A DNA stretch of 64,000 nt from positions 124,001 through 188,000 of IMG/VR virus record IMGVR_UViG_3300042566_001780; one strand, written 5' to 3'. Position numbers and translations under genes: made by a program. This document shows positions 10,080-42,124 of this stretch, piece by piece. The notes under the pieces are model-generated. The model made no database searches, was not told the DNA's origin, and saw only the letters and a program-made list of their open reading frames with translations. Positions within the stretch are counted from its first letter, which is position 1; each line of letters opens with the position of its first letter.

Positions 10080-11204
10080 ATGGCAAATGAAAAAGTCAAA
10101 AAAGTCAGTGTTGTTATTGGCCGCTTTTCTCCATTCCACAATGGACACAAGTACATTCTGGAAACTGTTGCCAAGCAATCTCATAAAGTCATTGTTCTGA
10201 TTGGGTCTTCTTTCCAATCGCGTTCATTGAAAAACCCGTTCACTTTTGCTGAACGTCAATCTGTTATCGAAGCTTGGGCCAAAGATAACGAGATTGAAAA
10301 CACCTACATTTATCCGATTCGCGACTATCCCTACAATGATGCGCAATGGATCAAATCTATCCAAGAAGCAGTGTCTTATGCTACGTTGCTCGACAATCGC
10401 CCTCTCGAAATCCATTTGACTGGGTGCGATAAAGATTCCTCTACTTGGTATCTCCATGCTTTCCCACAGTGGAAGACTCATTTCCTGTCGGAATACACTG
10501 GCCAGGATTTGAAGACTAACGCTACACTGGTTCGAGAAATTCTTTTTTCTGGCGATCCAATGTCTCATATTGCGCCTATGGTGCCAACTCAAACTCTTGA
10601 CTTTATTTCCAAGTTCAAACGAACTGCTGAATTTGAAAATCTGAAGCAGGAATATGAAATCAACCGCAAATATAAGGCGGCGTGGTCGGTAGCTCCTTAT
10701 GCTCCGACCTTTAACACTGCTGATGCAGTAGTGATTCAATCTGGGCATGTTCTTGTCGTAGAGCGTGGAGCAATGCCGGGTAAAGGTCTTTGGGCATTTC
10801 CTGGTGGATTCATAAATCAAAATGAGCGTATTCAGGATGCTGCAATTCGCGAGTTGATTGAAGAAACTGGTATTTGCTTGGCTGAAGGAAAAAGGAAGCA
10901 TGAACTAACGAAAAACATCCTTCAAGGCTCAATCCGAGCAAAAGAGATTTTTGATCATCCTACTCGATCTGAACGTGGCCGCACGATTACTGTGGCATAT
11001 TTGTTCAGGCTCGACGATACAAAGCCGCTTCCTCAAGTATCTGGTCAATACATTCCAGAATATGAAAGTCGTGGCCAACAGATTGTAGAAACTGCCAATG
11101 CATTTTGGCTGCCTATCAATGATGCTCTGCAACAAACTGAAAAATGGTTTGAAGATCACTGGAGTATTTTGGCATGGGCCACTGCAATTAAAGATTCTCG
11201 TTAA
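10080..11204 (+). CDS. nadM: Bifunctional NMN adenylyltransferase / ADP-ribose pyrophosphatase (NadM-Nudix)
   Basis: IGRFSPFHNGH (HxGH) nucleotidyltransferase motif, KNPFTFAER, Nudix box GGFINQNERIQDAAIRELIEETG, WFEDH terminus. Confidence 0.95.
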   Translation: MANEKVKKVSVVIGRFSPFHNGHKYILETVAKQSHKVIVLIGSSFQSRSLKNPFTFAERQSVIEAWAKDNEIENTYIYPIRDYPYNDAQWIKSIQEAVSYATLLDNRPLEIHLTGCDKDSSTWYLHAFPQWKTHFLSEYTGQDLKTNATLVREILFSGDPMSHIAPMVPTQTLDFISKFKRTAEFENLKQEYEINRKYKAAWSVAPYAPTFNTADAVVIQSGHVLVVERGAMPGKGLWAFPGGFINQNERIQDAAIRELIEETGICLAEGKRKHELTKNILQGSIRAKEIFDHPTRSERGRTITVAYLFRLDDTKPLPQVSGQYIPEYESRGQQIVETANAFWLPINDALQQTEKWFEDHWSILAWATAIKDSR

Positions 11205-13058: not shown

Positions 13059-13958
13059 ATGGGACAAGGTCGCTGGACATCTGATAGTTTTACAACTTAC
13101 GCATCCACCACCAATTATCGTGCAATGAGCCGTGATGCTGTTTTCAGCAAATCTGTTCAGGCTGAACTGAAGACTGAATCTATCAAGGTTCGTGAATCTC
13201 GTGACTCTGCTGATAGCCCCAATTCGACTCCAATTATCCTCGGTCTGGATGTGACAGGCTCGATGGGTGAATATGCTGAGCGCATTGCCAAGGATGAACT
13301 GCCGAAGCTGATGAATGCAATTTTGGAACAGTCTCCTGTTGCTGATCCGCATCTGATGTTTATGGCTATTGACGATGTGCATGCATACAGTCAAGTGCCG
13401 CTGCAGGTGTCTCAATTTGAAGCCGACATTCGAATTCTGGAACAGCTTCGCAAGATTGTTCTGGTTGGCGGTGGCGGTGGCAACAAGTCTGAGTCTTACG
13501 ACTTGGCATGGTACTGTGCTGGTATGAAGACTTCGATCGACTCTTTCGAGAAGCGTGGTGAAAAAGGTTTCTTGTTTACCTTTGGTGATGAAGAAGCCCC
13601 TTACGAAACTTTGTCGATCAACGAGCAGACTCAAGTGTTTGGCGCTGGACAATATATTCCTATGCAGCCTCGAGAAATCCTGGATGCTGCAAAAAAGATG
13701 TATAATGTCTTTCACATCGTTATTGAACAAGGAAGTTATGCTCGAAGCCGATTCGATTCGGTGAAGAAAACATGGACTGATTTGCTTGGTAATAATGTTC
13801 TGTTCCTGAAAGATTTTCGAAATCTGTCGGAACTGGTAACAAGTACTATTCGAATTGCAAAAGGCGAAGACATGAGTCAAGTCATTCACAATTCGTCTAT
13901 TCCTCAAGAATTGAAGTACGCTTACCAAAATGCGTACGCATCGATGGAAACTGCGTGA
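13059..13958 (+). CDS. von Willebrand factor A (vWA) domain protein
   Basis: IILGLDVTGSMG (MIDAS-like), GGGGGNKSESY, LFTFGDE. Confidence 0.8.
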   Translation: MGQGRWTSDSFTTYASTTNYRAMSRDAVFSKSVQAELKTESIKVRESRDSADSPNSTPIILGLDVTGSMGEYAERIAKDELPKLMNAILEQSPVADPHLMFMAIDDVHAYSQVPLQVSQFEADIRILEQLRKIVLVGGGGGNKSESYDLAWYCAGMKTSIDSFEKRGEKGFLFTFGDEEAPYETLSINEQTQVFGAGQYIPMQPREILDAAKKMYNVFHIVIEQGSYARSRFDSVKKTWTDLLGNNVLFLKDFRNLSELVTSTIRIAKGEDMSQVIHNSSIPQELKYAYQNAYASMETA

Positions 13959-13959
13959 A

Positions 13960-15255
13960 ATGAACCACATAGTTGTTGGCTCTGGCTACGGTGATGAAGG
14001 CAAAGGATTGATGACCGATTATTTGGTCCGTCAATCCAATGCTAAAAACGTCGTTCGGTTTAATGGTGGTGCTCAAGCGGGCCATACTGTCCAAACTGAT
14101 CATCGCCGTTATGTATTTGGACACTTGTCTGCAGGTACGTTTGCCGGAGCCAACACTATTCTGACTCGAGATTTCCTAATCAATCCTCGTGCATTGGTCA
14201 AGGAAATCCAGGATATGGAGGGCATTGGCCCCTCTTGTTATCCTGAAATCAAAGCGCATCGTAGTTGCCGAGTTACAACCATTTTCGATATTGCTATCAA
14301 TGCAGTGTTGGAAATTTCTCGTGGATCTAGTGCTCACGGCTCTTGCGGGATGGGTATCAATGAGACTGTAGTTCGAAATGATAACCCGCTGCTTTTTGGA
14401 ACTCGTTTGTATGATGTCAAGCAAATGAGTGTCAAACAACTTGCAGAAAAACTGAAAACCATTCATGATAAATGGGTACCAATTCGCCTGAAAGAGCATG
14501 GCATTACGATTGGTTCACTCGAGAGCATGAATGACAATTTTGCAAATATTCTTTGCAAAGAAATCAACTACATCCAAGAAGCACGGTTGATGCTTGATGC
14601 ATTGTCTGAAATTTCATATGATGATCAATCTGCGCTGATCGGTAATACGGTTTTTGAGGGTGCTCAGGGTCTTGGGCTTGACGAAGAATTTGGACATTTT
14701 CCACATGTGACCCGGTCAAAAACTGGATCTGTGTGGGCATTCGATTATTTGGATGATTATTTCTTTGGTCAATATGTAGGCAGCTTGGTTTACGGACGAT
14801 CTGGCACGTATTGGCTTGAAAATGTAGAAGTAGTATATGTCACCAGGGCGTATGCTACTCGTCACGGTAATGGACCGCTGTCTGAAGCTGGTGGAAATAT
14901 TGGTGATGGGTCAAATGTTTATGATTTGACTAACAAACCAAATCCATTTCAAGGATCACTTCGATTTGCTCCATTGAATTTGCAATTACTTCGAGATAAC
15001 ATTCAAAAAGATATTGCTCGAACTGATAGAAGTTTGCGGAAAAATGGAAACGCTCCACAACACACATACCAGAAAGTGATTGCACTCACCTGTATGGATC
15101 AACTTGGCAATTATGTCAATGTGATTGATGTTAACGGTGTTATTCGCCCAGTCCTCTCGTCTGATCTTCCACAAATGATTGAGGAACAGGTTGGACTTAG
15201 AGTAAAATACATTAGTCATGGGCCAAAAGCCTCTGACATCAAAAAAGTTTTCTAA
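13960..15255 (+). CDS. Divergent adenylosuccinate synthetase (PurA)-like protein
   Basis: Start moved to ATG 13960. GYGDEGKG, RFNGGAQAGHT, FEGAQG, TRAYATRHGNGP, ISHGP; the aspartate-binding loop is divergent. Confidence 0.85.
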   Translation: MNHIVVGSGYGDEGKGLMTDYLVRQSNAKNVVRFNGGAQAGHTVQTDHRRYVFGHLSAGTFAGANTILTRDFLINPRALVKEIQDMEGIGPSCYPEIKAHRSCRVTTIFDIAINAVLEISRGSSAHGSCGMGINETVVRNDNPLLFGTRLYDVKQMSVKQLAEKLKTIHDKWVPIRLKEHGITIGSLESMNDNFANILCKEINYIQEARLMLDALSEISYDDQSALIGNTVFEGAQGLGLDEEFGHFPHVTRSKTGSVWAFDYLDDYFFGQYVGSLVYGRSGTYWLENVEVVYVTRAYATRHGNGPLSEAGGNIGDGSNVYDLTNKPNPFQGSLRFAPLNLQLLRDNIQKDIARTDRSLRKNGNAPQHTYQKVIALTCMDQLGNYVNVIDVNGVIRPVLSSDLPQMIEEQVGLRVKYISHGPKASDIKKVF

Positions 15256-15345: not shown

Positions 15346-16737
15346 ATGGAACAACTTAGCTACAACCCTATCCTCGACGTCGATTCGTACAAAGCTGCAC
15401 ACCAGTTTTCGTACCCAAAGAACGTCACCGGCATGTTCTCTTATATTGAGGCACGCACCAAGAATGATGTGATGATTCCGTTTGGACTGTCGATGTTCTT
15501 GCAAAAGTACATGTCAATCCAAATAACGAAGGCTTATATCGATGAAGCTGAAGAATTCTTCAAGCTGCACGGTGAACCATTTTCTCGTGAACCCTGGGAG
15601 CACATTGTCAACGAATATGACGGCTTTATGCCTCTCACTATTCGTGCAGTACCTGAAGGAACTCCGGTGAAAAGCTCTAATGCAATTGTCACTGTTCAAT
15701 GTGATGATCCTGCAGTGCACTGGCTGTCTTCTTACGTCGAAACCAAAATCCAACGCGCAATTTGGTATCCTACTACGATTGCTTCAATGGACTATGCAAT
15801 CAAGCGGGTCTTTAAGGAATTCTATGAAGCTACTGGGGCAGATATGAATTTGCTCCCGTTTGCCCTCCATGATTTTGGTGCGCGTGGTGTCGCAAGCTAC
15901 GAGCAATCTGAAATTGGCGGTGCAGCACACATGGTCAACTTCATGGGTTCTGACACCGTGGCAGGTATTCGTGCTGCAAACTTCTATTACAGTGAGCAAA
16001 TGGCCGGGTTTTCTGTGCCGGCTACTGAGCACAGTGTGGAATGCTCGTTTGGTGAAGAAAATGAAATCGGTTATCTGGAACACGTCATTGACAATCTGGC
16101 CAAGCCTGGTGGTATTGTGTCTATTGTGATTGACGGCTATGATGTTTATCGTGCTGCGCAAACTCTTTGCACTACGCTGAAAGACAAGATCATTGCAAGC
16201 GGCGTCAAGGTCGTATTCCGCCCTGATAGTGGGGATATGCAAGTGGTGGTGCCTCGTATCCTTGAATTGCAGGCCGCTACTTTTGGTTATGAAGTCAATG
16301 AAAAAGGCTTCAAGAAGATTAAATACGTTGGCATTATCCAAGGTGATGGCGTTGATCACTTGTCCATTCGTTCGCTGCTTGGCAAAATGAAGGTGATGGG
16401 TTTCTCTGCTGATAACGTGGTTTTTGGATCTGGTGGTGCACTGCTCCAAAAGGTCAATCGAGACGTTTTCAAATTCGCCCAAAAAGCTTCTGCTGTTCGG
16501 ATTGATGGGAAGTGGGTCGGTATCAGTAAAAATCCAATCACCGATCCCGGAAAGCGAAGCAAGGAAGGCGTTTTGACTCTTGTTAAGAGTCGACTGACTG
16601 GTGAATACTCTACGGCTCGAATTGATGATAAGCGTCTTGATTCTGAGTTTGAAGACCAAATGGAACTTGTCTACTACAATGGCAAGATCATGAATTCTCC
16701 AACTTTGTCTGAAATTCGAGAACGCTGCAAGCTGTAA
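15346..16737 (+). CDS. nadV: Nicotinamide phosphoribosyltransferase (NAMPT/NadV)
   Basis: ILDVDSYKAAH, LHDFGARG, VPATEHS, VSIVIDGYD, VVFRPDSGD, IIQGDG, FGSGGALLQKVNRD, KRSKEG. Confidence 0.95.
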   Translation: MEQLSYNPILDVDSYKAAHQFSYPKNVTGMFSYIEARTKNDVMIPFGLSMFLQKYMSIQITKAYIDEAEEFFKLHGEPFSREPWEHIVNEYDGFMPLTIRAVPEGTPVKSSNAIVTVQCDDPAVHWLSSYVETKIQRAIWYPTTIASMDYAIKRVFKEFYEATGADMNLLPFALHDFGARGVASYEQSEIGGAAHMVNFMGSDTVAGIRAANFYYSEQMAGFSVPATEHSVECSFGEENEIGYLEHVIDNLAKPGGIVSIVIDGYDVYRAAQTLCTTLKDKIIASGVKVVFRPDSGDMQVVVPRILELQAATFGYEVNEKGFKKIKYVGIIQGDGVDHLSIRSLLGKMKVMGFSADNVVFGSGGALLQKVNRDVFKFAQKASAVRIDGKWVGISKNPITDPGKRSKEGVLTLVKSRLTGEYSTARIDDKRLDSEFEDQMELVYYNGKIMNSPTLSEIRERCKL

Positions 16738-16813: not shown

Positions 16814-17425
16814 ATGACCGAAATTAACTTAGATAACTCCCCACTGCAATTCATTGTTACTACTTTAGACGAAGAAGATCGACCCAAAATTGAATCTCAT
16901 TTACTACGTCTTTCTAAAGAAGATCGCTATTTGCGATTTTTTGCTGCACTTGGTGATTCCCAAATCAAACACTACGCTTCAACTATTGACCTGAAAAAGG
17001 GGAAGGCTTTCGGCATCATTACCCTGCCAGATCGCAAGCTGGTTGCATTAGCTCATGTATCTGAGATTGAAAAATCTGATCATAGAGTCATTGCAGAAAT
17101 GGGCGTCTCAGTTGATGCCGATGTTCGAGTTCAAGGCCTTGGAAAAAGACTGATGGATCGCACGGTGACTTACTGCCAAACCCATGGAATCAACACACTG
17201 TTTATGTCATGCTTGCGCGAGAACAAAGTCATGCAAAAGCTGGCAAAAGATTTTGATTTGCGGATTGTGCTTGACGCTGGAGAGGCCATGGCAGAACTTG
17301 ATTTGGATCCACTGGACAAAATGAAAGCCATGCCGAAAGAAATGCTATACCAGCAAATTTCTTTGTTTGACAAAGCATTCAAGCACAACAAAATGTTGAT
17401 CGATGCCGTTTTTAGTGTACAATAA
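16814..17425 (+). CDS. GNAT-family acetyltransferase
   Basis: DRYLRFF, AEMGVSVDADVRVQGLGKRLM (acetyl-CoA binding motif), ENKVMQKLA. Confidence 0.85.
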   Translation: MTEINLDNSPLQFIVTTLDEEDRPKIESHLLRLSKEDRYLRFFAALGDSQIKHYASTIDLKKGKAFGIITLPDRKLVALAHVSEIEKSDHRVIAEMGVSVDADVRVQGLGKRLMDRTVTYCQTHGINTLFMSCLRENKVMQKLAKDFDLRIVLDAGEAMAELDLDPLDKMKAMPKEMLYQQISLFDKAFKHNKMLIDAVFSVQ

Positions 17426-17457: not shown

Positions 17458-17898
17458 ATGTTCAAATCTGCTATCTTGGCTTCTGCAATTCTTGCACTTT
17501 CTGCAAGTAGCATGGCTTCCAGCGACTCTGGAGATTGGGAACTCTTGGCAAAAGGCACAGATCGCACTTACACCGTTTTGACTGAAAGCATTCAAATTGA
17601 CATCACTAACCAAAGTGCTCAATTTGCAATGAAGGTTGAATATACACCGCCGGTCAAGTTGAGTAAGAAGCCAGGTGATGTACTTGTTACCTCTGTTGAG
17701 ACTACATTGGTGTTGTGTGATGCTGATAAAGTCATTTCAATGACTCGACTGGGCATGAATCAGAAGGGTGAATACGTGGTTGATGATAATTATGCCATGG
17801 TTTATTCCAAGACGAAAGCGCCAAACATGGTCATTACACACATTTACAATTTTGCATGTGAAAAAGTTTCGAAGCATGTGAAAAAGAAGACGATTTAG
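17458..17898 (+). CDS. Secreted/periplasmic hypothetical protein
   Basis: Signal peptide MFKSAILASAILALSASSMA; two Cys; ends TAG TGA. Confidence 0.7.
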   Translation: MFKSAILASAILALSASSMASSDSGDWELLAKGTDRTYTVLTESIQIDITNQSAQFAMKVEYTPPVKLSKKPGDVLVTSVETTLVLCDADKVISMTRLGMNQKGEYVVDDNYAMVYSKTKAPNMVITHIYNFACEKVSKHVKKKTI

Positions 17899-17915
17899 TG
17901 ATAGAATTCATTTAA

Positions 17916-17992
17916 CGCCACTTAGCTCAGTTGGTCAGAGCAAGAGCTTCTAACACTCCAGGTCGCGGGTTCGAGCCCCGCAGTGGCGACCA
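17916..17992 (+). tRNA. tRNA with CUA anticodon (putative amber suppressor); anticodon stem has two mismatches
   Basis: Acceptor CGCCACT/AGTGGCG, A73, encoded CCA; D arm GCTC/GAGC; loop TT-CTA-AC at 17948-17954 in standard register; variable AGGTC; T arm GCGGG-TTCGAGC-CCCGC. Confidence 0.75.
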
Positions 17993-20024: not shown

Positions 20025-20447
20025 ATGAAAATGACTGCAAATATCTTTATGCAAGCTTCCCGCATGAAACTGCGTTTCCCCTCTAACAAGGGTGATCTAA
20101 CTGTGGAACAACTGTGGGATCTTCCGCTGTCTTCCAAGACGGCTTTTGATCTGGATACCATTGCCCGTGCAGTGTATACTCAGATGAATGCTGTGTCGGA
20201 ACCGAGTTTTGTGGCAGTTCGTTCCAATCCCGTCAAGGAAAAGCTGGAATTGTCTCTGGAAATCGTGAAGCACATCATCTCGGTGAAGATGGCTGAAAAT
20301 GAAGTGGCCGCAAAGCGTGCCGCAGCTCGAGTGGAACGTGATCGACTGATGTCTATCCTGGCAGATAAGCAGGATGCAGAAACCCGATCGCTGTCTGTGG
20401 ATGAAATCCGCAAGCGCCTCGCGGATCTGGATGCAGAAACTGCTTAA
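20025..20447 (+). CDS. Hypothetical coiled-coil protein
   Basis: LRFPSNKGDLTVEQLWDLPL N-terminus and helical C-terminus; directly follows the 664-aa gene. Confidence 0.75.
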   Translation: MKMTANIFMQASRMKLRFPSNKGDLTVEQLWDLPLSSKTAFDLDTIARAVYTQMNAVSEPSFVAVRSNPVKEKLELSLEIVKHIISVKMAENEVAAKRAAARVERDRLMSILADKQDAETRSLSVDEIRKRLADLDAETA

Positions 20448-20458: not shown

Positions 20459-20489
20459 AATAGGATAGGGAATTGTTCCCTATCCTATT
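20459..20489 (+). terminator. 14-bp hairpin separating the amber-interrupted gene pair from the upstream operon
   Basis: AATAGGATAGGGAA-TTG-TTCCCTATCCTATT; no clear T tract. Confidence 0.7.
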
Positions 20490-20508
20490 ACCACTAATGG
20501 AGAAAATC

Positions 20509-20847
20509 ATGAAATCGTAGATCAACCAAAAATTCTATCTGTACTCTATCTCTCGCTGTGATATCCCAATCGCACATCGCGCCATTCAGGCAACACACTC
20601 CGCGATGGAGTATTGTTACCAATTTGGCCGCTCTCCGGATTTTCATCCGTCTTTCATTCATCTAACTGCAAAAGACAAAGATGCTCTACTTGAGCTAAAG
20701 TCTAAGCTGAATGCATCTGGCATTCAGACTGCAGAATTTCACGAACCGTACAGTGACTGGGGGCTGACCTCAATTTCATGTTGTCTTTCTGAAGATCAGC
20801 GTGGAATGTTGTCGCATCTCAAACTTTGGTCCATTAAGGAGAAATGA
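20509..20847 (+). CDS. Peptidyl-tRNA hydrolase PTH2-like protein with in-frame TAG at codon 4
   Basis: GGAG RBS, then ATG AAA TCG TAG ATC, in frame with ORF 20605. The intervening sequence encodes YLYSISRCDIPIAHRAIQATHSA, matching the PTH2-fold N-terminal RxD...QxxH pattern. Confidence 0.75.
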
Positions 20848-20849
20848 GC

Positions 20850-21431
20850 ATGACGACGTAGATTCCTACTGTTGAAGAAGCAATTGAGAAATCTAGTGAG
20901 GGTTTTCAGTTTGCTACGGTGTCATTCTTGAGGCACGGTGAGCTTGTTGCTGAAAGGTTTGAGGACCTTATGTCTTTGGAAAGAAAACACCCCTGGGCCT
21001 CACCGGGATGGTTCTCGAGTCATTTTGAAGACATTCGATCTAAGCTATTACCACAAATGGACATGATCAAGACCTATCAAAAATTTCACGACATTGGAAA
21101 ACCATTCTGTAAAGTGGTTGATGAAAATGGAAAAGCTCATTATCCCAATCATGCAAAAATTTCAGCACAAATCTGGAACACATCTGGTCGATGTCCTATC
21201 ATTGGAGAATTGATTGCCCGTGATATGGAATTTCATCTCTTGAAACCTAGTGAAATTGATGAAAACTATCCCATTGATTCGCTAAGCTTGATTTTGATGG
21301 TGACTGCGTTATGTGAACTTTATGCAAATGCAGAAATGTTTGATGGACTTGAGTCTGATAGCTTCAAGATTAAATGGAAGCGATTGGACAAAATTGGGAG
21401 CAAACTAATTAGTAGGATGTTGAATCTGTGA
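20850..21431 (+). CDS. HD-domain protein with in-frame TAG at codon 4
   Basis: AAGGAG RBS, then ATG ACG ACG TAG ATT, in frame with ORF 20919. LRHGELV...YQKFHDIGKPF...HYPNHA HD motifs; the GTG at 20919 has no RBS. Confidence 0.75.
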
Positions 21432-21480: not shown

Positions 21481-22566
21481 ATGTCAGGTTCACCCTTTTT
21501 AGATCAGCTTCAAGAAAACGTAAGAAATTACGTTGAGCGCACCAGCGGAAATGGATCTAGAACTTTGGGAGTCGAAGACATAATTGCTTCATCATTAGCA
21601 CGAGTAAAACCTGCATCTTCGAATGTAGTAGATACTAATGTGCCGGGGTATCCGCCAACCCCAACCGGTTTTACTGTTTCAGCAGAATCTTCCTACATTG
21701 TTGTATCACATGATCAACCGATTTATACTTTGGGTGGCGGGCACTCTCTAACTAGAGTGTATGGTAAATTAAAAGTAGATTCTCAAATACCAGTTTTTGC
21801 TGACGCTGAAGAAATAGGTCAATTTACCGGATATATTTGGCTGATGCCGGCCAGCCCAAATGAAATTTGGCATTTGTGGATAAAGTGGGAAGCCATAAAT
21901 GAGAATATCAGTAATACTCCTGCTGGTGGAGATAATGGATTAGTCGCTACTACAAGTAAGGTAGATGCTGCCAGTATCGATACCCGTGGCTTAGACATTA
22001 AAGATGACTCTGGAAATACTATTTTTTCTCCGACTGGAGAAATTTCCAATCAAGCTTTCTTGAATGTTAATGGAAATAACATTCTTTTGTCTGATATTGC
22101 ATCAGGTAGTCTGATACCGGCATTAAGCTATGTTGGAGATTTTGCTACACCACCAACTGAAGGTACCCTGGGTGGTGATTGGCGACAAAATGCAGTCTAT
22201 AAAAACCCAACTGATGGAAAATCATATGTGTTAACCGGTTCTCCGTTAGCTTGGGTAGAATATTTGGTCGACGGCCAATCATTCTATTTGACAATAGAAT
22301 CTACTAATGGAACATCCTTTAGAGTTGGCCAGAATATAAATACAACATTGAAGGCACGATTATTTAAAAATGGTGCTGAAGTTACAAATGAAACCCCGGA
22401 AAGTTGGTTCTTTTGGCGCCGATTATCTGGAATACCCCAACAACCACCTAATGACGATGCAACATGGAATGCCCTGTACGCTGGCGGATATAAACAAGTG
22501 ACAATTAATGTCGATGATGTTTATGCTCGTGCTACATTTTTCTGTGACATCATAAGTAATTACTAA
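21481..22566 (+). CDS. Tail fibre/tail tip-associated structural protein
   Basis: Late promoter upstream; Thr/Gly/Ser-rich beta-type sequence; C-terminal Ig-like segment (TTLKARLFKNGAEVT...WFFWRR). Confidence 0.6.
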   Translation: MSGSPFLDQLQENVRNYVERTSGNGSRTLGVEDIIASSLARVKPASSNVVDTNVPGYPPTPTGFTVSAESSYIVVSHDQPIYTLGGGHSLTRVYGKLKVDSQIPVFADAEEIGQFTGYIWLMPASPNEIWHLWIKWEAINENISNTPAGGDNGLVATTSKVDAASIDTRGLDIKDDSGNTIFSPTGEISNQAFLNVNGNNILLSDIASGSLIPALSYVGDFATPPTEGTLGGDWRQNAVYKNPTDGKSYVLTGSPLAWVEYLVDGQSFYLTIESTNGTSFRVGQNINTTLKARLFKNGAEVTNETPESWFFWRRLSGIPQQPPNDDATWNALYAGGYKQVTINVDDVYARATFFCDIISNY

Positions 22567-22574
22567 GGAAAATC

Positions 22575-24041
22575 ATGGCCCAATTAGTTTCAACTGGTCA
22601 AATAACAATCGTTGATACCAACGATGCGCGCACCATAACAGCAGTTTTAGTTGCAAATGGAGCAACACAACAGATCTATACAAAAGATGAATCGACGGTA
22701 ACATATGTGCCAAGTTGGTTTACGACCAACTTGGTGATTACACCGCAGATTGCTATTGGCGGTATGACATCTGCGCAAACTTGGGCTGCACTTAGTAATA
22801 AAACTTTTGCTTTAACAGCAGGCGGTGCAGCTTTAACGACAGCCTCTACATCTGCTTCATTCGTCAATAACAGCGATGTGGTAGTGAACACGCCATTTGT
22901 CGTTACTCATGCAGCAGCAGGATCTTCCACACCGTCAACTATAGCTATAGCAGCAAACCTTAAAGATTCAGTGGCTGCATTTACGTTATTTTTTGATGCT
23001 GATTTTGTTGATCCAACCACACTTTTAGTAACGCATATCACATGTCAGATTACTCTCACCACGGTGAAGACTGGCACTAATGCTGTTTTTATTACGTTGC
23101 GCGGACAAACTAGTATCGAAGAAGCTACGGGATCTGTTAAAAACAATATTGCAATTGCCGCAGATTTAGTTCGCTCTAGCGGAATTGATACCACTAATTT
23201 AACTTATAAGTGGTATGAAGACGGAGGTGGTGTTCAGATCACGACATCACTTGCTAGTTATGCTACTAAATATGGGTTGAAAACATCCAGTGCCGGCACT
23301 GTACCAACAGCAACCGGCACTGACCTTGGTGTAAACATTCCAGGAGTTGGTACTGGAAATGCTTTTAACACATTAGTAATCAATGAAACTGCTGTTGCAG
23401 ATATTGAAATATATAAGGTTGAAATTACTGATGGTGATTCAAAAACATATGTAGCATATTTCACAATCTATGATTTAAGCGATCCTTATGAAGTCCGAGT
23501 TTTATCGTCAACTGGAGATAAGTTGCAAAATGGTCAGGGGAGCACAGTTTTAACACCTGAAGTATTTTACGGTGCCACAAAAGTCTCGTCATTGACAGAT
23601 TGGTCATTTACGTGGTTCTTCTATGATAGGAATGGTAAACGGGGTGCTTTTGTTGACACGGCAAAAATTAGCACTGCTGGCGGAGCTAATATTTCAGCAA
23701 ACACTACAGGTAATAGCGCCACTTTTACATATGGTGGTACTAGCTACGCCTTTACCGCTGGTATGATTATTAAGGCAGTGAAGCCAAATGGAGAAGCATT
23801 TTTCTATGAAGTTGCAAGTAGCACCACAAATAGCGTAACTATTAGAGCACCGTCGATTAACACATGGTTGACATTTGTTGATTATCCTGCCCCGTCATCT
23901 ACTACTGATTTTGTTAATGGAAAACTATTTGGATGTACTACAGGTGGCACCAGAACCACTATCAACAACAATAGCATTACATTGACTGGTGATGAAGTTG
24001 ACAGTAAAGCTAGAATCTTAGTTGAAGCTTATCGTCCATAA
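22575..24041 (+). CDS. Tail fibre-associated structural protein
   Basis: MAQLVSTGQITIVDTND start parallels MPTLVSSGDITISDVND of the next gene; Ig-like beta-rich sequence. Confidence 0.6.
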   Translation: MAQLVSTGQITIVDTNDARTITAVLVANGATQQIYTKDESTVTYVPSWFTTNLVITPQIAIGGMTSAQTWAALSNKTFALTAGGAALTTASTSASFVNNSDVVVNTPFVVTHAAAGSSTPSTIAIAANLKDSVAAFTLFFDADFVDPTTLLVTHITCQITLTTVKTGTNAVFITLRGQTSIEEATGSVKNNIAIAADLVRSSGIDTTNLTYKWYEDGGGVQITTSLASYATKYGLKTSSAGTVPTATGTDLGVNIPGVGTGNAFNTLVINETAVADIEIYKVEITDGDSKTYVAYFTIYDLSDPYEVRVLSSTGDKLQNGQGSTVLTPEVFYGATKVSSLTDWSFTWFFYDRNGKRGAFVDTAKISTAGGANISANTTGNSATFTYGGTSYAFTAGMIIKAVKPNGEAFFYEVASSTTNSVTIRAPSINTWLTFVDYPAPSSTTDFVNGKLFGCTTGGTRTTINNNSITLTGDEVDSKARILVEAYRP

Positions 24042-24092: not shown

Positions 24093-27000
24093 ATGCCAAC
24101 ATTAGTAAGTTCTGGTGACATCACTATTAGCGATGTCAATGATGGTCTTAATGCAAGACTATCTAATGAGTCACACGTTATTCCAACAGATGCAGATGGG
24201 TTAAATGGAGATTTCTCTGGTTGCTCTACTACTATATCTGTGTTTGTTGGTCCCATAGATGATTCTGCAAACTGGACTATTACAGCTTTGGCATCTCCAG
24301 GTTTAACTGGTACATTAGCTGGCAGGACGTATACGGTAACTGCATTGAGCGGAGATATTGGGTATGTTGATCTAACTGCTTCTAAAACTGGTTTCCCATC
24401 TATTACGTCTAGATTTTCTGTTTCTAAAGCAGTTGCTGGCACCAATGGTCAAGATGCATCTCAAATTGCTGTAGTTGCAACCCAATGGGATTATCGTGAC
24501 GATGATGCAGCTTGGGGCATCAGAATTAACGGTACACTGCAAACAGGCGCTGCACGTGGTCATAAACTTGTAGTATTGAACCCAGCTACTAATACAGTAT
24601 CGATAAATCAAAACTACGATACTTATGGATCTGTATCTAATACAGATAGTTTGGCTGCTGCAATTTCTGCGGTTGCGGACGGACTAGTGGTCATTCTTAC
24701 CACATATGATGCTACTCAATGTAATCAAAATTTGAGAAATGCTTTAAGATTATGCGGAAGTGAATCAACTGAAACCTGGGCAACACAACGTAAATCTCAC
24801 GCTTTCATTGGCCAAAAAGGTCTTCCTATTGGTGCTGCATATGAAAAGACTGGATTTGGCACCACCTCTGCTGGTACTTCAAGAGTAGCTGCATATTTTA
24901 CCACTAGTGGCGTTGTGCGAAATGGATCTACTGCATTTAATGCAGTTTCAGCAATTCTTTCTAATGAAGCACATGTGTTTACTGCATCAACTGCCGGTGT
25001 GGTTGCTTCATATGTTGGATCTGGCACTGAGCTACGGGTGTATGATGGTACTGTTTTATTGACATATGATGGTTCTGGTACTTTACCAGGTACTTGGAAG
25101 TTTACAAATGTTGCTTCAAACATCACAATTGGGGCGATATCTGATAGCGGCGCATTTGCCACTATTGGCGATCATTCAGGTGTTGCTGATGGTGTTGACA
25201 CATCTAGCATTACATACACTATTACTGGTAAATCGTTAATTAATTCCGATTTCACTTTAGTGAAGGTACAGACCTTTAGTAAAGCTAAACGTGGAATAGA
25301 AGGCGATAATGCTATATCCGTAACGCTATCAAATGAAACTCACGTTTTTCCAGCTACTTACACAAATATAGTTTCTAATTATAGGAATTCTGGAACTGAA
25401 ATCCAAGTTCTTGAAGGAGCAACTGAATTAGCATATGATGCGGCCGGGTTAACTCCCGGCACATGGAAAGTTGATACCTCATCAAGTAACATAGTTGCCG
25501 GTCCTGTCAAAAAATTTATTTTGGGAGATGATTGGGTTTTTAATGATGGGATGGGCAGCAGTGGATGGGGGGTTAATACTGCAGTAACTTGTATTATTTG
25601 GGCAAATAATCAATTTATTGCTGGTGGCACAAATGGAAAAATTGCTACTAGTTCTGATGGAATTACCTGGTCGGTAAATGAAAATTTATCAAAAACTGGG
25701 TGGGGAGATAGCGTAATTTTAGACATAATTTGGACTGGTGTTCAGTATGTTTTAGTAGGAGCCAATGCTACCTATTCTTCAGATCTTAGTATTTGGTATG
25801 CAAATGGATCAATAAATTCTACAGCTGTGGCTACTAGTTCTGATGGAATTAATTGGGAATATCAACCCGACTTAAATCTAAAAACAAATAATGGCGCATT
25901 ATGCATAGCTTGGAATGGATCAAAATATGTTGCTGGTGGTCAAGCTGGGTTAATAGCAACCAGTTTAGATGCTAAAACCTGGGAAATTAGCACAAATTTG
26001 TCGTCTACTGCGTGGGGCACAAATGTATCTGGTGATTCAGTTGATGTTCTTGATATAAATTGGAATGGATCGCAATTTTTAGCTGTAGGGGTTTTGGGGC
26101 GTGTGGCCACCAGTCCTGACGGTGTAACTTGGACATATCAGGCTGGGTTAACTAGTACAGCATGGGGGACCAGTTTAACTGGCGCGGTTAGATCAATTAA
26201 TTGGAATGGGTCCCAGTATGTTATTGTTGGGCAAGGCGGGAGAGTGGCTACAAGTCCTAATGGTATCACGTGGACATATCAAAGTGGATTAGCAAGTACT
26301 GCTTGGGGTGCAGGAGCAATATATTCTATAAATTGGAATGGATCTCAATATATTGTAGTTGGCGCATCTGGCAAAGTAGCTACAAGCCCAGATGGAATAA
26401 CTTGGACATATCAGAGCGGGATAACGAGTGTATGGGGGTCGAGTTATGATGCCTTTACTGTTATTTGGAATGGATCCAAATATGTCGTTGGTGGCGTTAG
26501 TGGATCAGTGGCAACGAGCGCCGATGGTATTACTTGGGCAAATCAGGGTGGGCTAGCTGGAACTGATAAGTGGTTAGATTCACCAGTTAATTCAGGAACA
26601 TTATTATCTAGATATGCTATTATTGGTGGTGACGGAGCTAAATTAGCAGTTAGATTTAATGATGAATGGGAATTTCAAGATGCTTTTGCCATTAAATCTG
26701 CTATCGATCTAACAGTTTTAGATTTTAATGGTTCGCAATATATTGTTGGCGGGACAAATGCAACGCTAGCTATAAGCAGTGATGGAATATATTGGACATA
26801 CCAAGATGGACTGGCTAATGCGAGCTGGGGGACCAGTGCTACTTACGATATAAATTGGAATGGATTTCAATACATGGCTGTCGGAGCTGGAGGCCGAGTA
26901 GCAACAAGTCCAGATGGTATTACCTGGACATATCAAAGCAGTCTAGCTAGTACAACTTGGGCGACAGCTACGGCTTATTCGATTAGTTGGAATGGATCTC

Positions 27001-30000
27001 AATATGTTATAGTTGGTACTTTAGGCAGGGTCGCTACAAGTCCAGATGGCATAACTTGGACTTATCAGGGCGGCTTGGCTAGTACAACTTGGAGCACTGC
27101 TACGGCCCGCTGTATTGTTTGGAACGGGTCACAATATCTCGTTGTAGGACAATCTGGACGAGTAGCTACAAGCCCAGATGGCATAACTTGGACTTATCAG
27201 GGTGGACTTAGAGCTACTTCGTGGGGAACATTAGATACGGTGTTTGATGTCCATTGGAATGGATCACAGTATTTGGTTGTTGGAGATTCAGGTAAAGTTG
27301 CAACTAGTCCAGATGGAATAACTTGGACAAATCAAACAGGCTTATCGAGTACTACTTGGGGGACGGTCAATGAAATATATTCAATTGGTTGGGATGGATC
27401 TCAATATGTAGTTTGCGGCATGGATGGTGATATAGCTACTAGCTTTGATGGTATAACATGGAAATACCAAGCGGGGCTTTGGAATACACCATGGGGAGCA
27501 TTAGATTATGCTAATAGCATTATTTGGGATGGAACACAATTCTTAGTTGTCGGGGATAATAGAAAATTAGCTACCAGCGTAGATGGAGTAAACTGGAAAT
27601 TTAAACCTAATTTATCTGGATGGAAAAATTCTGGGAATGTAAACCATCTTGCAAATATAGATAATACTGTTTATGCTCTTGGATCTGCTGGGAATATTGC
27701 ATGTTCAAATAATCTTATAGATTGGACATTTTTAGCCCCGGTTGGTGCTGTTGACATAGGGGCCGTTTCGCTTACTGGTATTGCAAAATCTGCAAATGAC
27801 ACATTATGTGCAATTGGGTCAAATAATCTAGTTATGGTGGGCAATGAGAATCAAAACTTATCATTACGCCTCGGTTATGCATCAATAAACACACGCTTTT
27901 TTGCTAATACCGCAAATAAAATAAATTGGAATGGTACACAATACCTTGCTGTTGGTAATGATGCAAGCATAGCAACTAGCGTAGATGGCGTAACGTGGGT
28001 TAATCAAGTTGGCTTAATAAGCGCTGACTGGGGAATAAGTAATATAAATGATGTCCATTGGAATGGATCACAATATGTCGTTGTTGGCAATTCTGGCAAA
28101 GTAGCTACGAGTCCAGATGGAATAACTTGGACAAATCAAACAGGCCTATCGAGTACTGCTTGGGGGATAGATGATATTTTTGCAGTGGCGTGGAATGGAT
28201 CGCAATACATAGTTGGTAGCAATTATGGTGGTATTGCAACTAGCCCAGATGGAATAACTTGGACATATAGAAGTGGATTAGCAAGCACAACGTGGGGAGC
28301 GGCTGCTGTGCGTGCAATTAACTGGAATGGATCGCAATATCTAGTGGCTGGTGCTTCTGGCAAAGTAGCTACAAGTCCAGATGGTATTACATGGGCATAT
28401 CAGGGGGGTTTAACCAGCACTACATGGGGGACAACTACGGCATATTTTGTTAACTGGAATGGATCACAGTATCTTATAGGCGGCGCAGCTGGGCGAATAG
28501 CAACTAGCCCAGATGGAATAACTTGGACATATAGAAGTGGATTAGCAAGCACAACGTGGGGGTCAGCATCGACAGCTATTGTTTATTCTATTAATTGGAA
28601 TGGATCGCAATATCTAGTGGCTGGTGGATCAGGTAAAGTTGCAACTAGCCCAGATGGAATAACTTGGACATATCAGAGCGGGTTGACTAGCACTGCGTGG
28701 AGTTCTAGCGCTGTTTTTTCAATTAGCTGGAATGGATCGCAATATCTAGTTGTTGGGGAATTGGGTAAAGTTGCAAGTAGCACAACTGGAGTATCTTGGG
28801 TGTATGGCCGCAGATTAACAAGTACTACATGGGGCGGGAGTGATATAAACGATATAGTTTGGAATGGATCTCAATATCTAGTTATTGGTGATTCAGGTAA
28901 AGTTGCAACTAGCACAACTGGAGTATCTTGGTCTTATCAACCATTATTGCAAGATACTTTATGGAGATCTACAAATATTAACGCAATTAACTGGAATGGA
29001 TCTCAATATCTTATATGCGGCGAGGGCGGTGCTATAGCAACCAGCCCAAATGGGGTAACTTGGACATATCAAAGTGGATTGACGAGCACTGCATGGGGGA
29101 CAACTGCCGTTTATGCAATTAACTGGAATGGATCGCAATATCTCATAGCTGGTGGATCAGGTAAAGTTGCAACTAGTCCAGATGGAATAACTTGGACAAA
29201 TCAAACAGGCCTATCGAGTACTGCTTGGGGGACAAATACTATATATTCTATTAGTTGGGGTGGATCTCAATATGTTATTGCTGGGAATTCTGGCGCTATA
29301 GCAACCAGCCCAAATGGGGTAACTTGGACATATCAAGGTGGTTTAGCCAGTACTGCTTGGGCGACTAGTGCAGTACGCAGCATTGTTTGGAATGGATCGC
29401 AATATCTAGTGGCTGGTGCTTCTGGCAAAGTAGCAACAAGCCCAAATGGAGTAACTTGGACATATCAAGGTGGTTTAGCCAGTACTGCTTGGGGTGCCGA
29501 AATAGTTTATTCAATAAGCTGGAATGGTTCACGTTATATAGTAGCAGGTGGTGATATTGGATCTACTGGTAAAGTAGCCACAAGTTCAAATGGCGTAACA
29601 TGGACATTTGCAGATATAAATAATGATTCTTCGTCTACGCCCATTTTAACAAAAAGTTATTACGATGGAACACGATTCATATTATGCAGCTCAGGCCAAT
29701 TGTGGTTTAGCACGGTCGGGGATATTAGCTTTTTATATCCTACTTGGACTATTACCCAAGCATTGCCAGCCGGATCTGAATGGAATACAAATACCTATGC
29801 TTCATCAATAGCATGGGGCAATAATGTTTTTTGTGTTGTTGGCGAATACGGAAGAGTGGCTACGAGTGTTGATGGTAATATTTGGATACACCAGGAATTG
29901 CTTAATTCAATTGGCGGATGGAACTATTCAAACATTAATCAAGTAATTTTTGCAAATGGAGTATTTTGCATTATTGGGGATTATGGCAATACAGCCATAA

Positions 30001-30935
30001 GCGCTGATGGCATCACCTGGCAAGTTAGCAATTCATTAGTTAGTACTGATTGGGGTAGAAATCCTATAACATCAATAGTTTGGGCTAATGGAAAATTCCA
30101 TATTTTTGGATATAATGGAAAGACCGCTTTTAGCTCGGACGGATTAACCTGGCAATTTAATAATAAAATTAGACTAACAGAATGGGGAATTGATAAAGAT
30201 ATTTTCTGCTCTTTTGCAAATGATGAAATCATTTACGCTGGGGGGACTGATGGATACCTAGTTTTTAGCGATGATTTTGTTGGTATTGAAATGCATTCCG
30301 ATTTCAATAATGGTGCAGATTCTGCCGTTATTGATTATCTAGTGACAGGATATTCCTCAAGAAACGAATATTTTAGTGTCAAAAAACAGCAAACTTTGAG
30401 TAAGGCTAAAACTGGAAATATTGCAACAGCCACATTTGGAGTAAACATTACTGGCCAAATAACACCAGCAAATGCAAGCACGTTTATTGCTAATACTGCA
30501 ATAGGAACTGCGCAAATTGCTGATGCAAGCGTAGAGACATTAAAGATTGCCGGTAATGCAGTTACCGTTCCGGCTTCAGCGTATACTGCCGCTGCATTTA
30601 CGCTGACTACAACATTTGCTGTTATTCAATCAGTTGTAGTTGATTTGCAGAGCGATATTCCGATACCAGTGATAATAACCTCATCATTTACTTTAAGTGG
30701 CGCAACGGTATCTCAGTTTAGAATTCTTCGTGGAACCACTGTGTTGTTTACATCTGGTGAAATAGTGCAGGGGACTGATGGCATAAATAAACCAACATCA
30801 CCTATTTCTATTGCTATTGGTGATACTGCTCCAATAGGAACGTCTACATATTACCTAGAAGCTAGATATGTAAGCGGGTTTACTGCTAGAACTGCCGCGA
30901 CTAGAAATCTAACAATATTAGGTGTAAAGAAATGA
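24093..30935 (+). CDS. Giant tail fibre / receptor-binding protein (2280 aa) with ILEI-like domain and about 30 Asp-box (BNR) repeats
   Basis: Three LSNExHV modules; ILEI/PANDER-like segment RGHKLVVLN...VVILTTYDA...SHAFIGQKG; about 30 copies of a ~44-aa unit KVATSPDGITWTYQSGLxSTAW...INWNGSQYLVxG. Confidence 0.8.
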   Translation: MPTLVSSGDITISDVNDGLNARLSNESHVIPTDADGLNGDFSGCSTTISVFVGPIDDSANWTITALASPGLTGTLAGRTYTVTALSGDIGYVDLTASKTGFPSITSRFSVSKAVAGTNGQDASQIAVVATQWDYRDDDAAWGIRINGTLQTGAARGHKLVVLNPATNTVSINQNYDTYGSVSNTDSLAAAISAVADGLVVILTTYDATQCNQNLRNALRLCGSESTETWATQRKSHAFIGQKGLPIGAAYEKTGFGTTSAGTSRVAAYFTTSGVVRNGSTAFNAVSAILSNEAHVFTASTAGVVASYVGSGTELRVYDGTVLLTYDGSGTLPGTWKFTNVASNITIGAISDSGAFATIGDHSGVADGVDTSSITYTITGKSLINSDFTLVKVQTFSKAKRGIEGDNAISVTLSNETHVFPATYTNIVSNYRNSGTEIQVLEGATELAYDAAGLTPGTWKVDTSSSNIVAGPVKKFILGDDWVFNDGMGSSGWGVNTAVTCIIWANNQFIAGGTNGKIATSSDGITWSVNENLSKTGWGDSVILDIIWTGVQYVLVGANATYSSDLSIWYANGSINSTAVATSSDGINWEYQPDLNLKTNNGALCIAWNGSKYVAGGQAGLIATSLDAKTWEISTNLSSTAWGTNVSGDSVDVLDINWNGSQFLAVGVLGRVATSPDGVTWTYQAGLTSTAWGTSLTGAVRSINWNGSQYVIVGQGGRVATSPNGITWTYQSGLASTAWGAGAIYSINWNGSQYIVVGASGKVATSPDGITWTYQSGITSVWGSSYDAFTVIWNGSKYVVGGVSGSVATSADGITWANQGGLAGTDKWLDSPVNSGTLLSRYAIIGGDGAKLAVRFNDEWEFQDAFAIKSAIDLTVLDFNGSQYIVGGTNATLAISSDGIYWTYQDGLANASWGTSATYDINWNGFQYMAVGAGGRVATSPDGITWTYQSSLASTTWATATAYSISWNGSQYVIVGTLGRVATSPDGITWTYQGGLASTTWSTATARCIVWNGSQYLVVGQSGRVATSPDGITWTYQGGLRATSWGTLDTVFDVHWNGSQYLVVGDSGKVATSPDGITWTNQTGLSSTTWGTVNEIYSIGWDGSQYVVCGMDGDIATSFDGITWKYQAGLWNTPWGALDYANSIIWDGTQFLVVGDNRKLATSVDGVNWKFKPNLSGWKNSGNVNHLANIDNTVYALGSAGNIACSNNLIDWTFLAPVGAVDIGAVSLTGIAKSANDTLCAIGSNNLVMVGNENQNLSLRLGYASINTRFFANTANKINWNGTQYLAVGNDASIATSVDGVTWVNQVGLISADWGISNINDVHWNGSQYVVVGNSGKVATSPDGITWTNQTGLSSTAWGIDDIFAVAWNGSQYIVGSNYGGIATSPDGITWTYRSGLASTTWGAAAVRAINWNGSQYLVAGASGKVATSPDGITWAYQGGLTSTTWGTTTAYFVNWNGSQYLIGGAAGRIATSPDGITWTYRSGLASTTWGSASTAIVYSINWNGSQYLVAGGSGKVATSPDGITWTYQSGLTSTAWSSSAVFSISWNGSQYLVVGELGKVASSTTGVSWVYGRRLTSTTWGGSDINDIVWNGSQYLVIGDSGKVATSTTGVSWSYQPLLQDTLWRSTNINAINWNGSQYLICGEGGAIATSPNGVTWTYQSGLTSTAWGTTAVYAINWNGSQYLIAGGSGKVATSPDGITWTNQTGLSSTAWGTNTIYSISWGGSQYVIAGNSGAIATSPNGVTWTYQGGLASTAWATSAVRSIVWNGSQYLVAGASGKVATSPNGVTWTYQGGLASTAWGAEIVYSISWNGSRYIVAGGDIGSTGKVATSSNGVTWTFADINNDSSSTPILTKSYYDGTRFILCSSGQLWFSTVGDISFLYPTWTITQALPAGSEWNTNTYASSIAWGNNVFCVVGEYGRVATSVDGNIWIHQELLNSIGGWNYSNINQVIFANGVFCIIGDYGNTAISADGITWQVSNSLVSTDWGRNPITSIVWANGKFHIFGYNGKTAFSSDGLTWQFNNKIRLTEWGIDKDIFCSFANDEIIYAGGTDGYLVFSDDFVGIEMHSDFNNGADSAVIDYLVTGYSSRNEYFSVKKQQTLSKAKTGNIATATFGVNITGQITPANASTFIANTAIGTAQIADASVETLKIAGNAVTVPASAYTAAAFTLTTTFAVIQSVVVDLQSDIPIPVIITSSFTLSGATVSQFRILRGTTVLFTSGEIVQGTDGINKPTSPISIAIGDTAPIGTSTYYLEARYVSGFTARTAATRNLTILGVKK
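25570..30290 (+). repeat. Tandem ~132-bp coding repeats within the tail fibre gene
   Basis: Near-identical blocks, e.g. GCAACTAGCCCAGATGGAATAACTTGGACATATAGAAGTGGATTAGCAAGCACAACGTGGGG at about 28237 and 28500. Boundaries are approximate. Confidence 0.85.
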
Positions 30936-31345
30936 AATTTACAATTTTCAATGTAACTACTGGAGAAATAGCTAAAAATGTCGATTGCTCAGAATCTACA
31001 ATTTTATTGCAGTATGATCCCTTAGAATATTCGCATATACCAGGAGAATGGGATTATTTTTCCACATACATAGAAAATGGCATCCCAATCCAAATGCCAG
31101 AGCGCCCAAGTGAATTTCACATCTTTGATTATTCTATTAAGGAATGGGTAGACCCAAGAACGCCAGATTCTGAATGGCTATTAGTTAGACAAAAACGAAA
31201 TCAATTGTTAGCTGAGTGTGATTGGACACAACTTCCAGATGTGCCGCTGCCAACCAAAGAGATATGGGCAATTTACCGTCAAGAATTAAGAGATATAACG
31301 CTTCAACCTGACCCATTTAATATTATTTGGCCTGAACAACCTTGA
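30932..31345 (+). CDS. Tail fibre assembly chaperone (XkdW-like C-terminus)
   Basis: VRQKRNQLLAECDWTQLPDVP...WAIYRQELRDIT...IIWPEQP. Confidence 0.85.
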   Translation: MKFTIFNVTTGEIAKNVDCSESTILLQYDPLEYSHIPGEWDYFSTYIENGIPIQMPERPSEFHIFDYSIKEWVDPRTPDSEWLLVRQKRNQLLAECDWTQLPDVPLPTKEIWAIYRQELRDITLQPDPFNIIWPEQP

Positions 31346-38146: not shown

Positions 38147-38803
38147 ATGAAAAAGTATCCGCGAACTGTTCACCTCCCTTGGTCCCTTGGAACCGAGAGC
38201 GATGACAAGATGTTGCAAAATGTAGATCATTTTGTTGGCAAGCAGATTGTCGTCACTATCAAAATGGATGGTGAGAACTGTACTGCCCACGCAAATGGTC
38301 ACATTCATGCTCGTTCTTTGGATAGTGTCTCGGGTCCTGATCGTGATTGGGTTAAAAAGTTTCTGCTTGAAAATGTGTGTTACAATCTTCCTGAGAACTG
38401 GCGTGTTTGCGGTGAAAATCTTTTTGCTAAGCACTCTATCTTCTACGAAGATCTGAAATCCTACTTTATGGGTTTTAGCATTTGGAATAACGAAAACATC
38501 TGTCTTTCGTGGGATGACACTCTTGCATGGTTCGAGTTGCTGAATGTGACTCCAGTTGAAGTTGTCTATGAGGGTATTTTTGATGTTGATGCATTGAAGA
38601 AGCTTGAAAAGACTATGGATTTTTCTAAGCAGGAAGGATATGTCATTCGACTAAAAGATTCATTCCACTATGATGAATTTGGCACCAATGTAGCAAAGTT
38701 TGTAAGAGCAAATCACGTGCAGACTGATCAACACTGGCGCCATTCTGCAATTGTTCCCAATGTCCTTAAGGATGAAAATGAAAAAGAAACGTGCAATAGT
38801 TAA
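38147..38803 (+). CDS. RNA ligase (compact nucleotidyltransferase domain)
   Basis: KYPRTVHLPWS, motif I KMDGEN, VCGEN, EGYVIR, AKFVRANH. Confidence 0.85.
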   Translation: MKKYPRTVHLPWSLGTESDDKMLQNVDHFVGKQIVVTIKMDGENCTAHANGHIHARSLDSVSGPDRDWVKKFLLENVCYNLPENWRVCGENLFAKHSIFYEDLKSYFMGFSIWNNENICLSWDDTLAWFELLNVTPVEVVYEGIFDVDALKKLEKTMDFSKQEGYVIRLKDSFHYDEFGTNVAKFVRANHVQTDQHWRHSAIVPNVLKDENEKETCNS

Positions 38804-41129: not shown

Positions 41130-41137
41130 AAGTTTTT

Positions 41138-41213: not shown

Positions 41214-41219
41214 AAAAAT

Positions 41220-41304: not shown

Positions 41305-41310
41305 AGTTAT

Positions 41311-42099: not shown

Positions 42100-42124
42100 T
42101 TTGTTCATGTTTAGTGTTATTTGC

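Follow-up and report, generated by a model that had tools for sequence, protein, structure and literature searches.

Why should two adjacent genes of a large phage, both apparently encoding enzymes that act on tRNA ends, each carry a stop codon three codons after a well placed start? The genes lie within a window of 64,000 nucleotides (the whole stretch of DNA analysed here, positions 124,001 to 188,000 of IMG/VR record IMGVR_UViG_3300042566_001780), which belongs to a large myovirus. A near-identity DNA search of the region against GenBank phages found nothing, indicating that no close cultured relative exists. An earlier note, made from the sequence alone, had claimed that both genes are interrupted by an in-frame TAG at codon 4, that an isolated tRNA with a CUA anticodon lies 2.5 kb upstream, and that full-length PTH2-like and HD proteins are made only when this suppressor tRNA is active.

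The sequence reads exactly as the note described, and the observation is confirmed. In gene 1, a Shine-Dalgarno GGAG at 20499-20502 is followed after 6 nt by ATG AAA TCG (20509-20517; M-K-S), the in-frame TAG at codon 4 (20518-20520) and ATC (to 20523). The body of the gene (20521-20847, + strand) stays open to a TGA at 20845-20847, and the first canonical start after the TAG is the ATG at 20605, 28 codons downstream. In gene 2, a Shine-Dalgarno AAGGAG at 20836-20841 is followed after 8 nt by ATG ACG ACG (20850-20858; M-T-T), the TAG at codon 4 (20859-20861) and ATT (to 20864). Its body (20862-21431, + strand) stays open to a TGA at 21429-21431, and the first canonical start after the TAG is the GTG at 20919, 19 codons downstream. 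A perfect 14-bp hairpin at 20459-20489 separates gene 1 from the upstream gene (20025-20447); its role is not known, but it may terminate the upstream unit.

The tRNA was found by ARAGORN at 17916-17992 on the + strand and scores 59.7 bits with the Rfam tRNA model. It has an encoded CCA end and discriminator A73, is 83% identical to a tRNA-Sup annotated in phage XacN1, and stands 23 kb from the main array of the other 11 tRNAs at 41045-42741. A consensus scan placed a promoter-like site (GTGAAA, 18 nt, TG-TAGAAT) directly upstream at 17878-17907 on the + strand, but this evidence is weak, as the number of such sites in the region is not above the shuffled expectation.

A genome-wide scan for other genes with a start, a few codons and then TAG had been named beforehand as a test. 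We ran it on the window, for an ATG, a few codons, a stop and a long open frame, and found no other real gene that needs TAG read-through. One TGA look-alike, ATG CAT CAC TGA at 39237, was rejected as chance because the downstream ATG at 39306 has its own purine-rich site, there is no family hit and there is no UCA tRNA. In 1.55 Mb of related loci the pattern occurs 106 times with TAG in these two gene families, whereas elsewhere on both strands it occurs 81 times with TAG, 117 times with TAA and 123 times with TGA, which is background level. The note had also listed assembly error as a possible refutation; raw reads were not examined, but the recurrence of the feature in more than 100 independent assemblies, several of them finished genomes of cultured phages, rules it out.

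To ask what the genes encode, we searched only the pieces after each stop. Pfam searches with the window proteins alone gave only sub-threshold noise and family alignments were needed. For gene 1 (108 amino acids after the TAG), an alignment of 56-60 homologues hits PTH2 peptidyl-tRNA hydrolase structures (2zv3 at E = 7e-8, and also 1rlk, 1rzw, 1wn2 and Bit1), and 42 of 56 aligned relatives match Pfam PF01981 (best E = 7.5e-11), but the window protein itself does not, so that the profile evidence leaves its membership undecided. The AF2 model (pLDDT 93.8; the alignments for both models were restricted to IMG/VR rows) has the predicted PTH2 alpha/beta fold: the top 15 Foldseek PDB hits are all PTH2-type entries (Bit1, MJ0051, PH1539, AF2095, Ta0108, the S. 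solfataricus Pth2 and Atu0240), with TM-scores of 0.53-0.76. Of the N-terminal motif R-x-D-L-x-M-x-x-G-K-x-A-A-Q-x-x-H-A, Q23 and H26 are invariant and R12 and D14 nearly so across the homologues, but the G-K segment is deleted in the window type, and the motif therefore does not settle the assignment either way. Hydrolysis of peptidyl- or N-acyl-aminoacyl-tRNA was not assayed and the activity of this divergent protein is uncertain. All four residues, strand 1 and half of helix 1 lie before the ATG at residue 29. The 80-residue ORF that starts there cannot be the functional product.

Gene 2 (189 amino acids after the TAG) matches PHROG 14850 at E = 2e-48. This 270-position family also covers the C-terminal part of gene 1, which was the first sign that the two genes are fused in some phages. 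The protein has the metal-binding residues of the HD-domain phosphohydrolase superfamily (H25, H76-D77, H97, D121 and H125, invariant in 62 sequences) in a predicted helical fold (AF2 pLDDT 96.1). Pfam HD (PF01966) matches 13 of 62 relatives, although not the window protein itself. The best and only significant PDB sequence match is the HD-bearing body of the A. aeolicus A-adding enzyme (3wfo/3wfp, E about 1e-4), which is also the best Foldseek match (TMq 0.6, E 0.02), and the HD region of a Clostridia CCA-adding enzyme matches residues 64-104. No nucleotidyltransferase head domain is present, and these matches are not enough to decide for a specific affinity with the HD region of class II tRNA nucleotidyltransferases over other HD families. 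Helix 1 and invariant Q16 lie upstream of the GTG at 20919, which likewise excludes the short ORF as the product.

The note had proposed aligning homologous pairs from related phages as a test, with a downstream start in the homologues as a possible refutation. Both genes were found side by side by tblastn in about 29 GenBank jumbo-phage records. In every cultured phage that we read, the unit starts with ATG, one or two codons, then TAG followed by A: ATG ACG CAC TAG AAT in Serratia phage BF, ATG GCA CAA TAG AAT in Cronobacter phage GAP32, ATG ACT TAG ATT in Acinetobacter phage ME3, ATG AAA TAG ATA in Tenacibaculum phage pT24, ATG AAG TAG ACC in both Xanthomonas phage XacN1 and Stenotrophomonas phage CM1, and ATG AAA TCG TAG ATC in Ralstonia phage RsoM2USA. 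The last of these, from the RsoM2USA HD gene, is identical to the first five codons of gene 1, and the codon-4 position of the gene 1 stop is shared with BF, GAP32 and most homologues. The two domains occur as separate genes, as a PTH2-HD fusion (pT24) and as an HD-PTH2 fusion (XacN1 and CM1), which argues that they work together. BF-like phages start the HD gene normally, overlapping the stop of the gated gene, but carry a TAG at codon 47. Database annotations start these genes downstream, split them or omit them.

A scan of IMG/VR gave 80 more loci. Over 85 loci and 132 distinct homologous units from jumbo phages, 103 units (including those of cultured BF, GAP32, CBB, ME3, pT24, XacN1 and RsoM2USA) have an in-frame stop closely preceded by a start codon, an arrangement that we term a gate. 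Of these, 86 are clean and 17 have some ATG, GTG or TTG before the conserved region. A further 24 units have ordinary starts, mostly HD genes directly behind a gated PTH2-like gene, and five were unclear. Later inspection showed a 12-codon leader in locus L034 and an ATG TAG start in L073 (L numbers denote individual loci of the comparison), leaving only L020 and L082 without any gate. Leaders are 2, 3 or 4 codons long in 85 of the 103 gates. The stop is TAG in 98 units, TGA in five and never TAA, although TAA ends 872 of 1560 long ORFs in these loci and TAG, the rarest, ends 151. Loci that lack the divergent PTH2-like gene have a canonical PTH2 with the full motif and the same gate in the same place. 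A second scan with those sequences showed 27 of 29 canonical phage PTH2 genes gated by TAG and one by TGA.

The family is almost confined to phages, with four hits in 185,579 species' genomes. For the genome scan the 62-sequence HD alignment was too diverse and an eight-sequence alignment was used. Two hits are phage-like contigs that are gated and carry tRNA-CUA, one is the CCA-adding enzyme noted above, and one, the only clearly cellular homologue, lies on a P. fluorescens megaplasmid and has neither gate nor suppressor. A census of neighbouring genes found no further gene family conserved with the module; the next family is present in only nine loci, and the GNAT gene next to the window's tRNA is not recurrent.

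Co-occurrence of the early TAG with a CUA tRNA was the other comparison that had been set out in advance. Within 10 kb of the genes, ARAGORN finds 54 suppressor tRNAs among 485 tRNAs, all on the strand of the genes and at a median of 1.4 kb from a gate. ME3 has one 0.4 kb upstream, and pT24, BF, CBB, GAP32 and fHe-Yen9-04 have one within 2.5-4 kb. In 28 TAG-gated loci no suppressor tRNA was seen within 10 kb; it may lie elsewhere, as in XacN1, where it sits in the terminal repeats, but complete genomes were not scanned, only 20-kb flanks. L020 has two CUA tRNAs next to an ungated HD gene, whereas L082 has no suppressor among 20 tRNAs.

Stop type and anticodon agree without exception. TAG is paired with CUA in 41 loci, L010 has TGA gates in both genes and two UCA tRNAs, and L046 has a TGA gate and a UCA tRNA. 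Agrobacterium phage Atu_ph07 has a PTH2 gene starting ATG ATT GGC GAA CAC TTT TGA ATT. No UCA tRNA was found within 10 kb of this gene, and its presence rests on the published report of a single suppressor with that anticodon (PMC6102473). The relatives of Atu_ph07 in loci L109-L113, L115 and L119 use TAG and carry tRNA-CUA; phage Phosso also uses TAG, but its tRNAs were not examined. On the HD tree the window groups with L008-L011 (support 100/98), with TGA-gated L010 nested among TAG loci, and L023 and L046 form a separate TGA pair, the two groups falling in separate TAG-dominated clades. Counting Atu_ph07, there have been at least three independent switches from TAG to TGA. Fisher's test gives p = 1e-3 for the HD set and 3e-5 overall, not corrected for phylogeny.

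In our view, the most consistent interpretation is a three-part translational gate made of the phage amber suppressor tRNA and two client genes, to which we assign a probability of about 0.8. In this view ribosomes start at the Shine-Dalgarno-served ATG of each client, translate two sense codons and meet UAG at codon 4. If charged phage tRNA-CUA is available it decodes the UAG and the full-length enzyme is made; if not, RF1 releases a tripeptide and no enzyme is made, so that output follows the ratio of active suppressor tRNA to RF1. The anatomy of the sequence, the protein families, the conservation of the gate, its linkage to suppressor tRNA genes and the match between stop codon and anticodon come directly from the data, whereas the occurrence of read-through, the residue inserted and the reason for the gate are inferences, there being no experimental evidence of read-through, tRNA expression or charging. 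The note's central inference is supported, by comparative evidence that it did not have, and each of its sequence-level claims held.

The context of the gates fits selection for suppression rather than termination. A at +4 occurs in 76% of gates against 25% of ORF-ending TAGs, and ATT follows in 39% against 4%; a 3' purine favours amber suppression in E. coli. Most of the suppressor tRNAs have the U33-CUA-A37-A38 loop. We could not infer the inserted amino acid, since internal TAGs align to variable columns and the suppressor tRNAs have no common isoacceptor relative, but its identity is probably irrelevant because the gate sits in a non-conserved N-terminus, where failure would cost only a short peptide. 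The lack of a common isoacceptor origin among the tRNAs fits this.

The best surviving alternative, which the note had itself raised, is termination followed by reinitiation at the adjacent near-cognate ATC or ATT, with no role for the tRNA. Both window genes have such a codon after the TAG, ATT, ATC or ATA follows 50 of 103 gates, and the Shine-Dalgarno site is too far (about 18 nt) to serve the ATC directly, so a relay through a three-codon mini-ORF would make sense. However, any stop codon would serve reinitiation, yet TAA is never used and the stop covaries with the linked suppressor anticodon. About half of the gates are followed by codons that are not known starts, such as AAT, AAC, ACC, GGC and GAA, and deeper in-frame TAGs, such as codon 47 of the BF/GAP32 HD gene, lie downstream of conserved residues and cannot be rescued by reinitiation. 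Reinitiation is not excluded as a minor pathway that may add a basal level, but we consider it unlikely as the main explanation.

Less likely still is that the phage uses TAG as a sense codon throughout its genome, as in code 15. A phage CUA tRNA with the matching anticodon is present, and recoded phages with suppressor tRNAs are well documented, but the expected abundance of in-frame TAGs at sense positions is not observed: only two are needed in 64 kb. Standard-code ORFs of at least 100 amino acids already cover 90% of the window, and TAG ends three + strand genes, one of them with TAG TGA TAG in tandem. The gates sit at codons 2-8 rather than scattered through genes, and their context differs from that of ORF-ending TAGs. 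Treating TAG as sense extends ORF cover in the related loci less than treating TGA as sense does, but comparing cover under different codes does not separate recoded from standard loci, because removing any stop lengthens spurious ORFs, and we rely on it only for the 90% figure. That the genes are decaying pseudogenes or assembly errors, or that the short ORFs favoured by gene callers and annotators are the real products, is very improbable given the recurrence of the feature, the strong constraint on the post-stop segments, the confident models of the full-length pieces and the absence of any frame disruption after the gate, pseudogene-like decay having been named at the outset as a ground for rejection.

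Comparison with known systems places the mechanism with programmed stop-codon decoding by phage suppressor tRNAs. In code 15 (TAG to Gln) and code 4 (TGA to Trp) recoding of crAss-like, Lak and other huge phages, a phage-encoded suppressor tRNA also decodes in-frame TAG or TGA, and a regulatory role, with genes readable only once the tRNA is made, has been proposed. There, tens to hundreds of codons are spread through many, mostly late, genes, whereas here one to three codons sit in two specific gene families, almost always at codons 2-8, in a genome that otherwise uses the standard code. In prfB (RF2) autoregulation, recently surveyed (PMC12421855), an early in-frame UGA similarly turns the contest between release factor and an alternative decoding event into dosage control. 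However, prfB escapes by +1 frameshifting, needs no dedicated tRNA and encodes the release factor itself. In the present case the partner is a trans-acting tRNA gene; feedback by the products on the suppressor tRNA is plausible, as both are predicted to act on tRNA 3' ends, but was not measured here. An engineered suppressor-tRNA feed-forward loop, the 'leak dampener' (PMC7969014), has the same logic of an amber codon in the target and a separately expressed suppressor, both needed for output, but it is synthetic, while this system is natural, ancient and tied to particular enzymes. Lambda bar minigenes share the two- or three-codon ORF ending in a stop and a functional link to peptidyl-tRNA hydrolase, a parallel that was not tested here. 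They stand alone and act by sequestering tRNA in Pth-deficient hosts; here the mini-ORF is continuous and in frame with a conserved enzyme gene and its stop matches a suppressor tRNA. In Qbeta A1 and MuLV gag-pol, programmed read-through occurs at the end of a complete protein, uses ordinary host tRNAs and gives C-terminal extensions; here the stop is N-terminal, a dedicated tRNA is encoded and the outcome is all or nothing.

Why the gate exists is a matter of inference only, and no result here shows its purpose. A single base change would remove it, yet it persists across HD proteins only about 35% identical, and we infer that dependence on the tRNA must be selected. One client is predicted to remove an acyl or peptidyl ester from the tRNA acceptor end, the other a phosphate or cyclic phosphate. 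We tentatively favour, at less than even odds, an interlock or feedback loop in which the suppressor would report that phage tRNAs are expressed, matured and charged, and would license or dose-match enzymes that are useful or safe only in that state. Variants include recycling of short peptidyl-suppressor tRNA (positive feedback), limiting of suppressor activity (negative feedback), and repair of or attack on tRNA 3' ends during the conflict with the host; nothing here tells these apart. In the furthest form of this reading, which is possible but no better than tentative, the suppressor tRNA of standard-code jumbo phages would have no other clients, and the tRNA and the two genes would form a self-contained, mobile circuit keyed by the tRNA, which would sense phage tRNA supply and charging relative to RF1 or RF2. 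The enzymes might repair defence-inflicted 3'-end damage, recycle short peptidyl-tRNAs, or strip host tRNAs once phage tRNAs are in place. This would be a natural tRNA-based interlock, a kind of control not so far known in any virus.

We found no prior description of the gate in the literature searched, which omits most subscription journals. Several jumbo-phage papers report an amber or opal suppressor tRNA in a standard-code genome without being able to say what it reads; the XacN1 authors state explicitly that they could not find targets (PMC5852040), and the RsoM2USA and Atu_ph07 papers only guess. The targets were missed because the leader is two to four codons long, so that gene callers start the genes downstream or skip them. 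The finding answers this question, corrects the annotation of a widespread gene pair and offers compact, context-tuned amber and opal gates with matching tRNAs. It shows a natural case of gene-specific control by a trans-acting tRNA, separate from whole-genome recoding, at the level of confidence given above for the mechanism, and this may represent a starting point or a remnant of code change in phages. It also links suppressor tRNAs to two enzymes of tRNA-end metabolism, which points to an untested piece of phage translation biology or of counter-defence.

The gene immediately upstream of the suppressor tRNA (17458–17898) ends in TAG TGA TAG (17896–17904), and these tandem stops would limit read-through by the tRNA. 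Across related loci, however, TAG-ended ORFs are not enriched for nearby back-up stops. A gene for a GNAT acetyltransferase (16814–17425; Pfam Acetyltransf_1, E = 7e-9) also sits next to the suppressor tRNA. GNAT toxins acetylate aminoacyl-tRNA and Pth reverses this modification, which made the gene appear to be a lead, but it is not recurrent near the module in other phages. We note that one related locus (L085) carries, in addition to tRNA-CUA, a tRNA with anticodon UUA at positions 14777–14855 of that locus, which is a putative ochre suppressor, although no TAA gate was seen anywhere. The only clearly cellular copy of the HD gene is found on the 971 kb Pseudomonas fluorescens megaplasmid pMPCFBP13716 (locus L122). 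This copy has no gate and no nearby suppressor tRNA, and its start codon is unclear.

In the window, a homing-endonuclease gene (41431–42099; PHROG 314, E = 2e-35) is inserted inside the tRNA array, between tRNA-Gln and tRNA-Asn. About 2 kb upstream of the main tRNA array is a gene (38147–38803) for a protein which matches the C-terminal part of a phage RNA ligase family (PHROG 24030, E = 3e-72). In Atu_ph07 the gated PTH2 gene lies about 1.7 kb from a T4 RnlA-type RNA ligase gene. An adenylosuccinate-synthetase-like gene is present at 13930–15255 (PHROG 1211, E = 2e-49). In some phages this family is PurZ, which makes the 2-aminoadenine DNA base, but whether the present copy is PurA-like or PurZ-like was not examined. 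Two NAD salvage genes were also identified, which encode a fused nucleotidyltransferase/NUDIX protein (10080–11204; PHROG 395) and a nicotinamide phosphoribosyltransferase (15346–16737; PHROG 448, E = 5e-144).

In the public GenBank records of phages BF, GAP32, RsoM2USA, Atu_ph07 and Phosso (loci L001, L002, L006, L088 and L090), the gated genes are truncated, split into small ORFs or left unannotated, and the annotation error is systematic across this gene pair. In the window, a perfect 14 bp inverted repeat (20459–20489) lies between the upstream gene and gene 1. On the + strand this repeat is not followed by a T run, so it is not a typical terminator in that direction. Farther downstream, two tail or tail-fibre genes (21481–24041) are followed by a single ORF of 2280 amino acids (24093–30935), which in turn precedes a tail-fibre assembly gene (30932–31345). 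The product of this long ORF is probably a giant fibre protein, and the gated genes therefore lie directly upstream of a late structural block.
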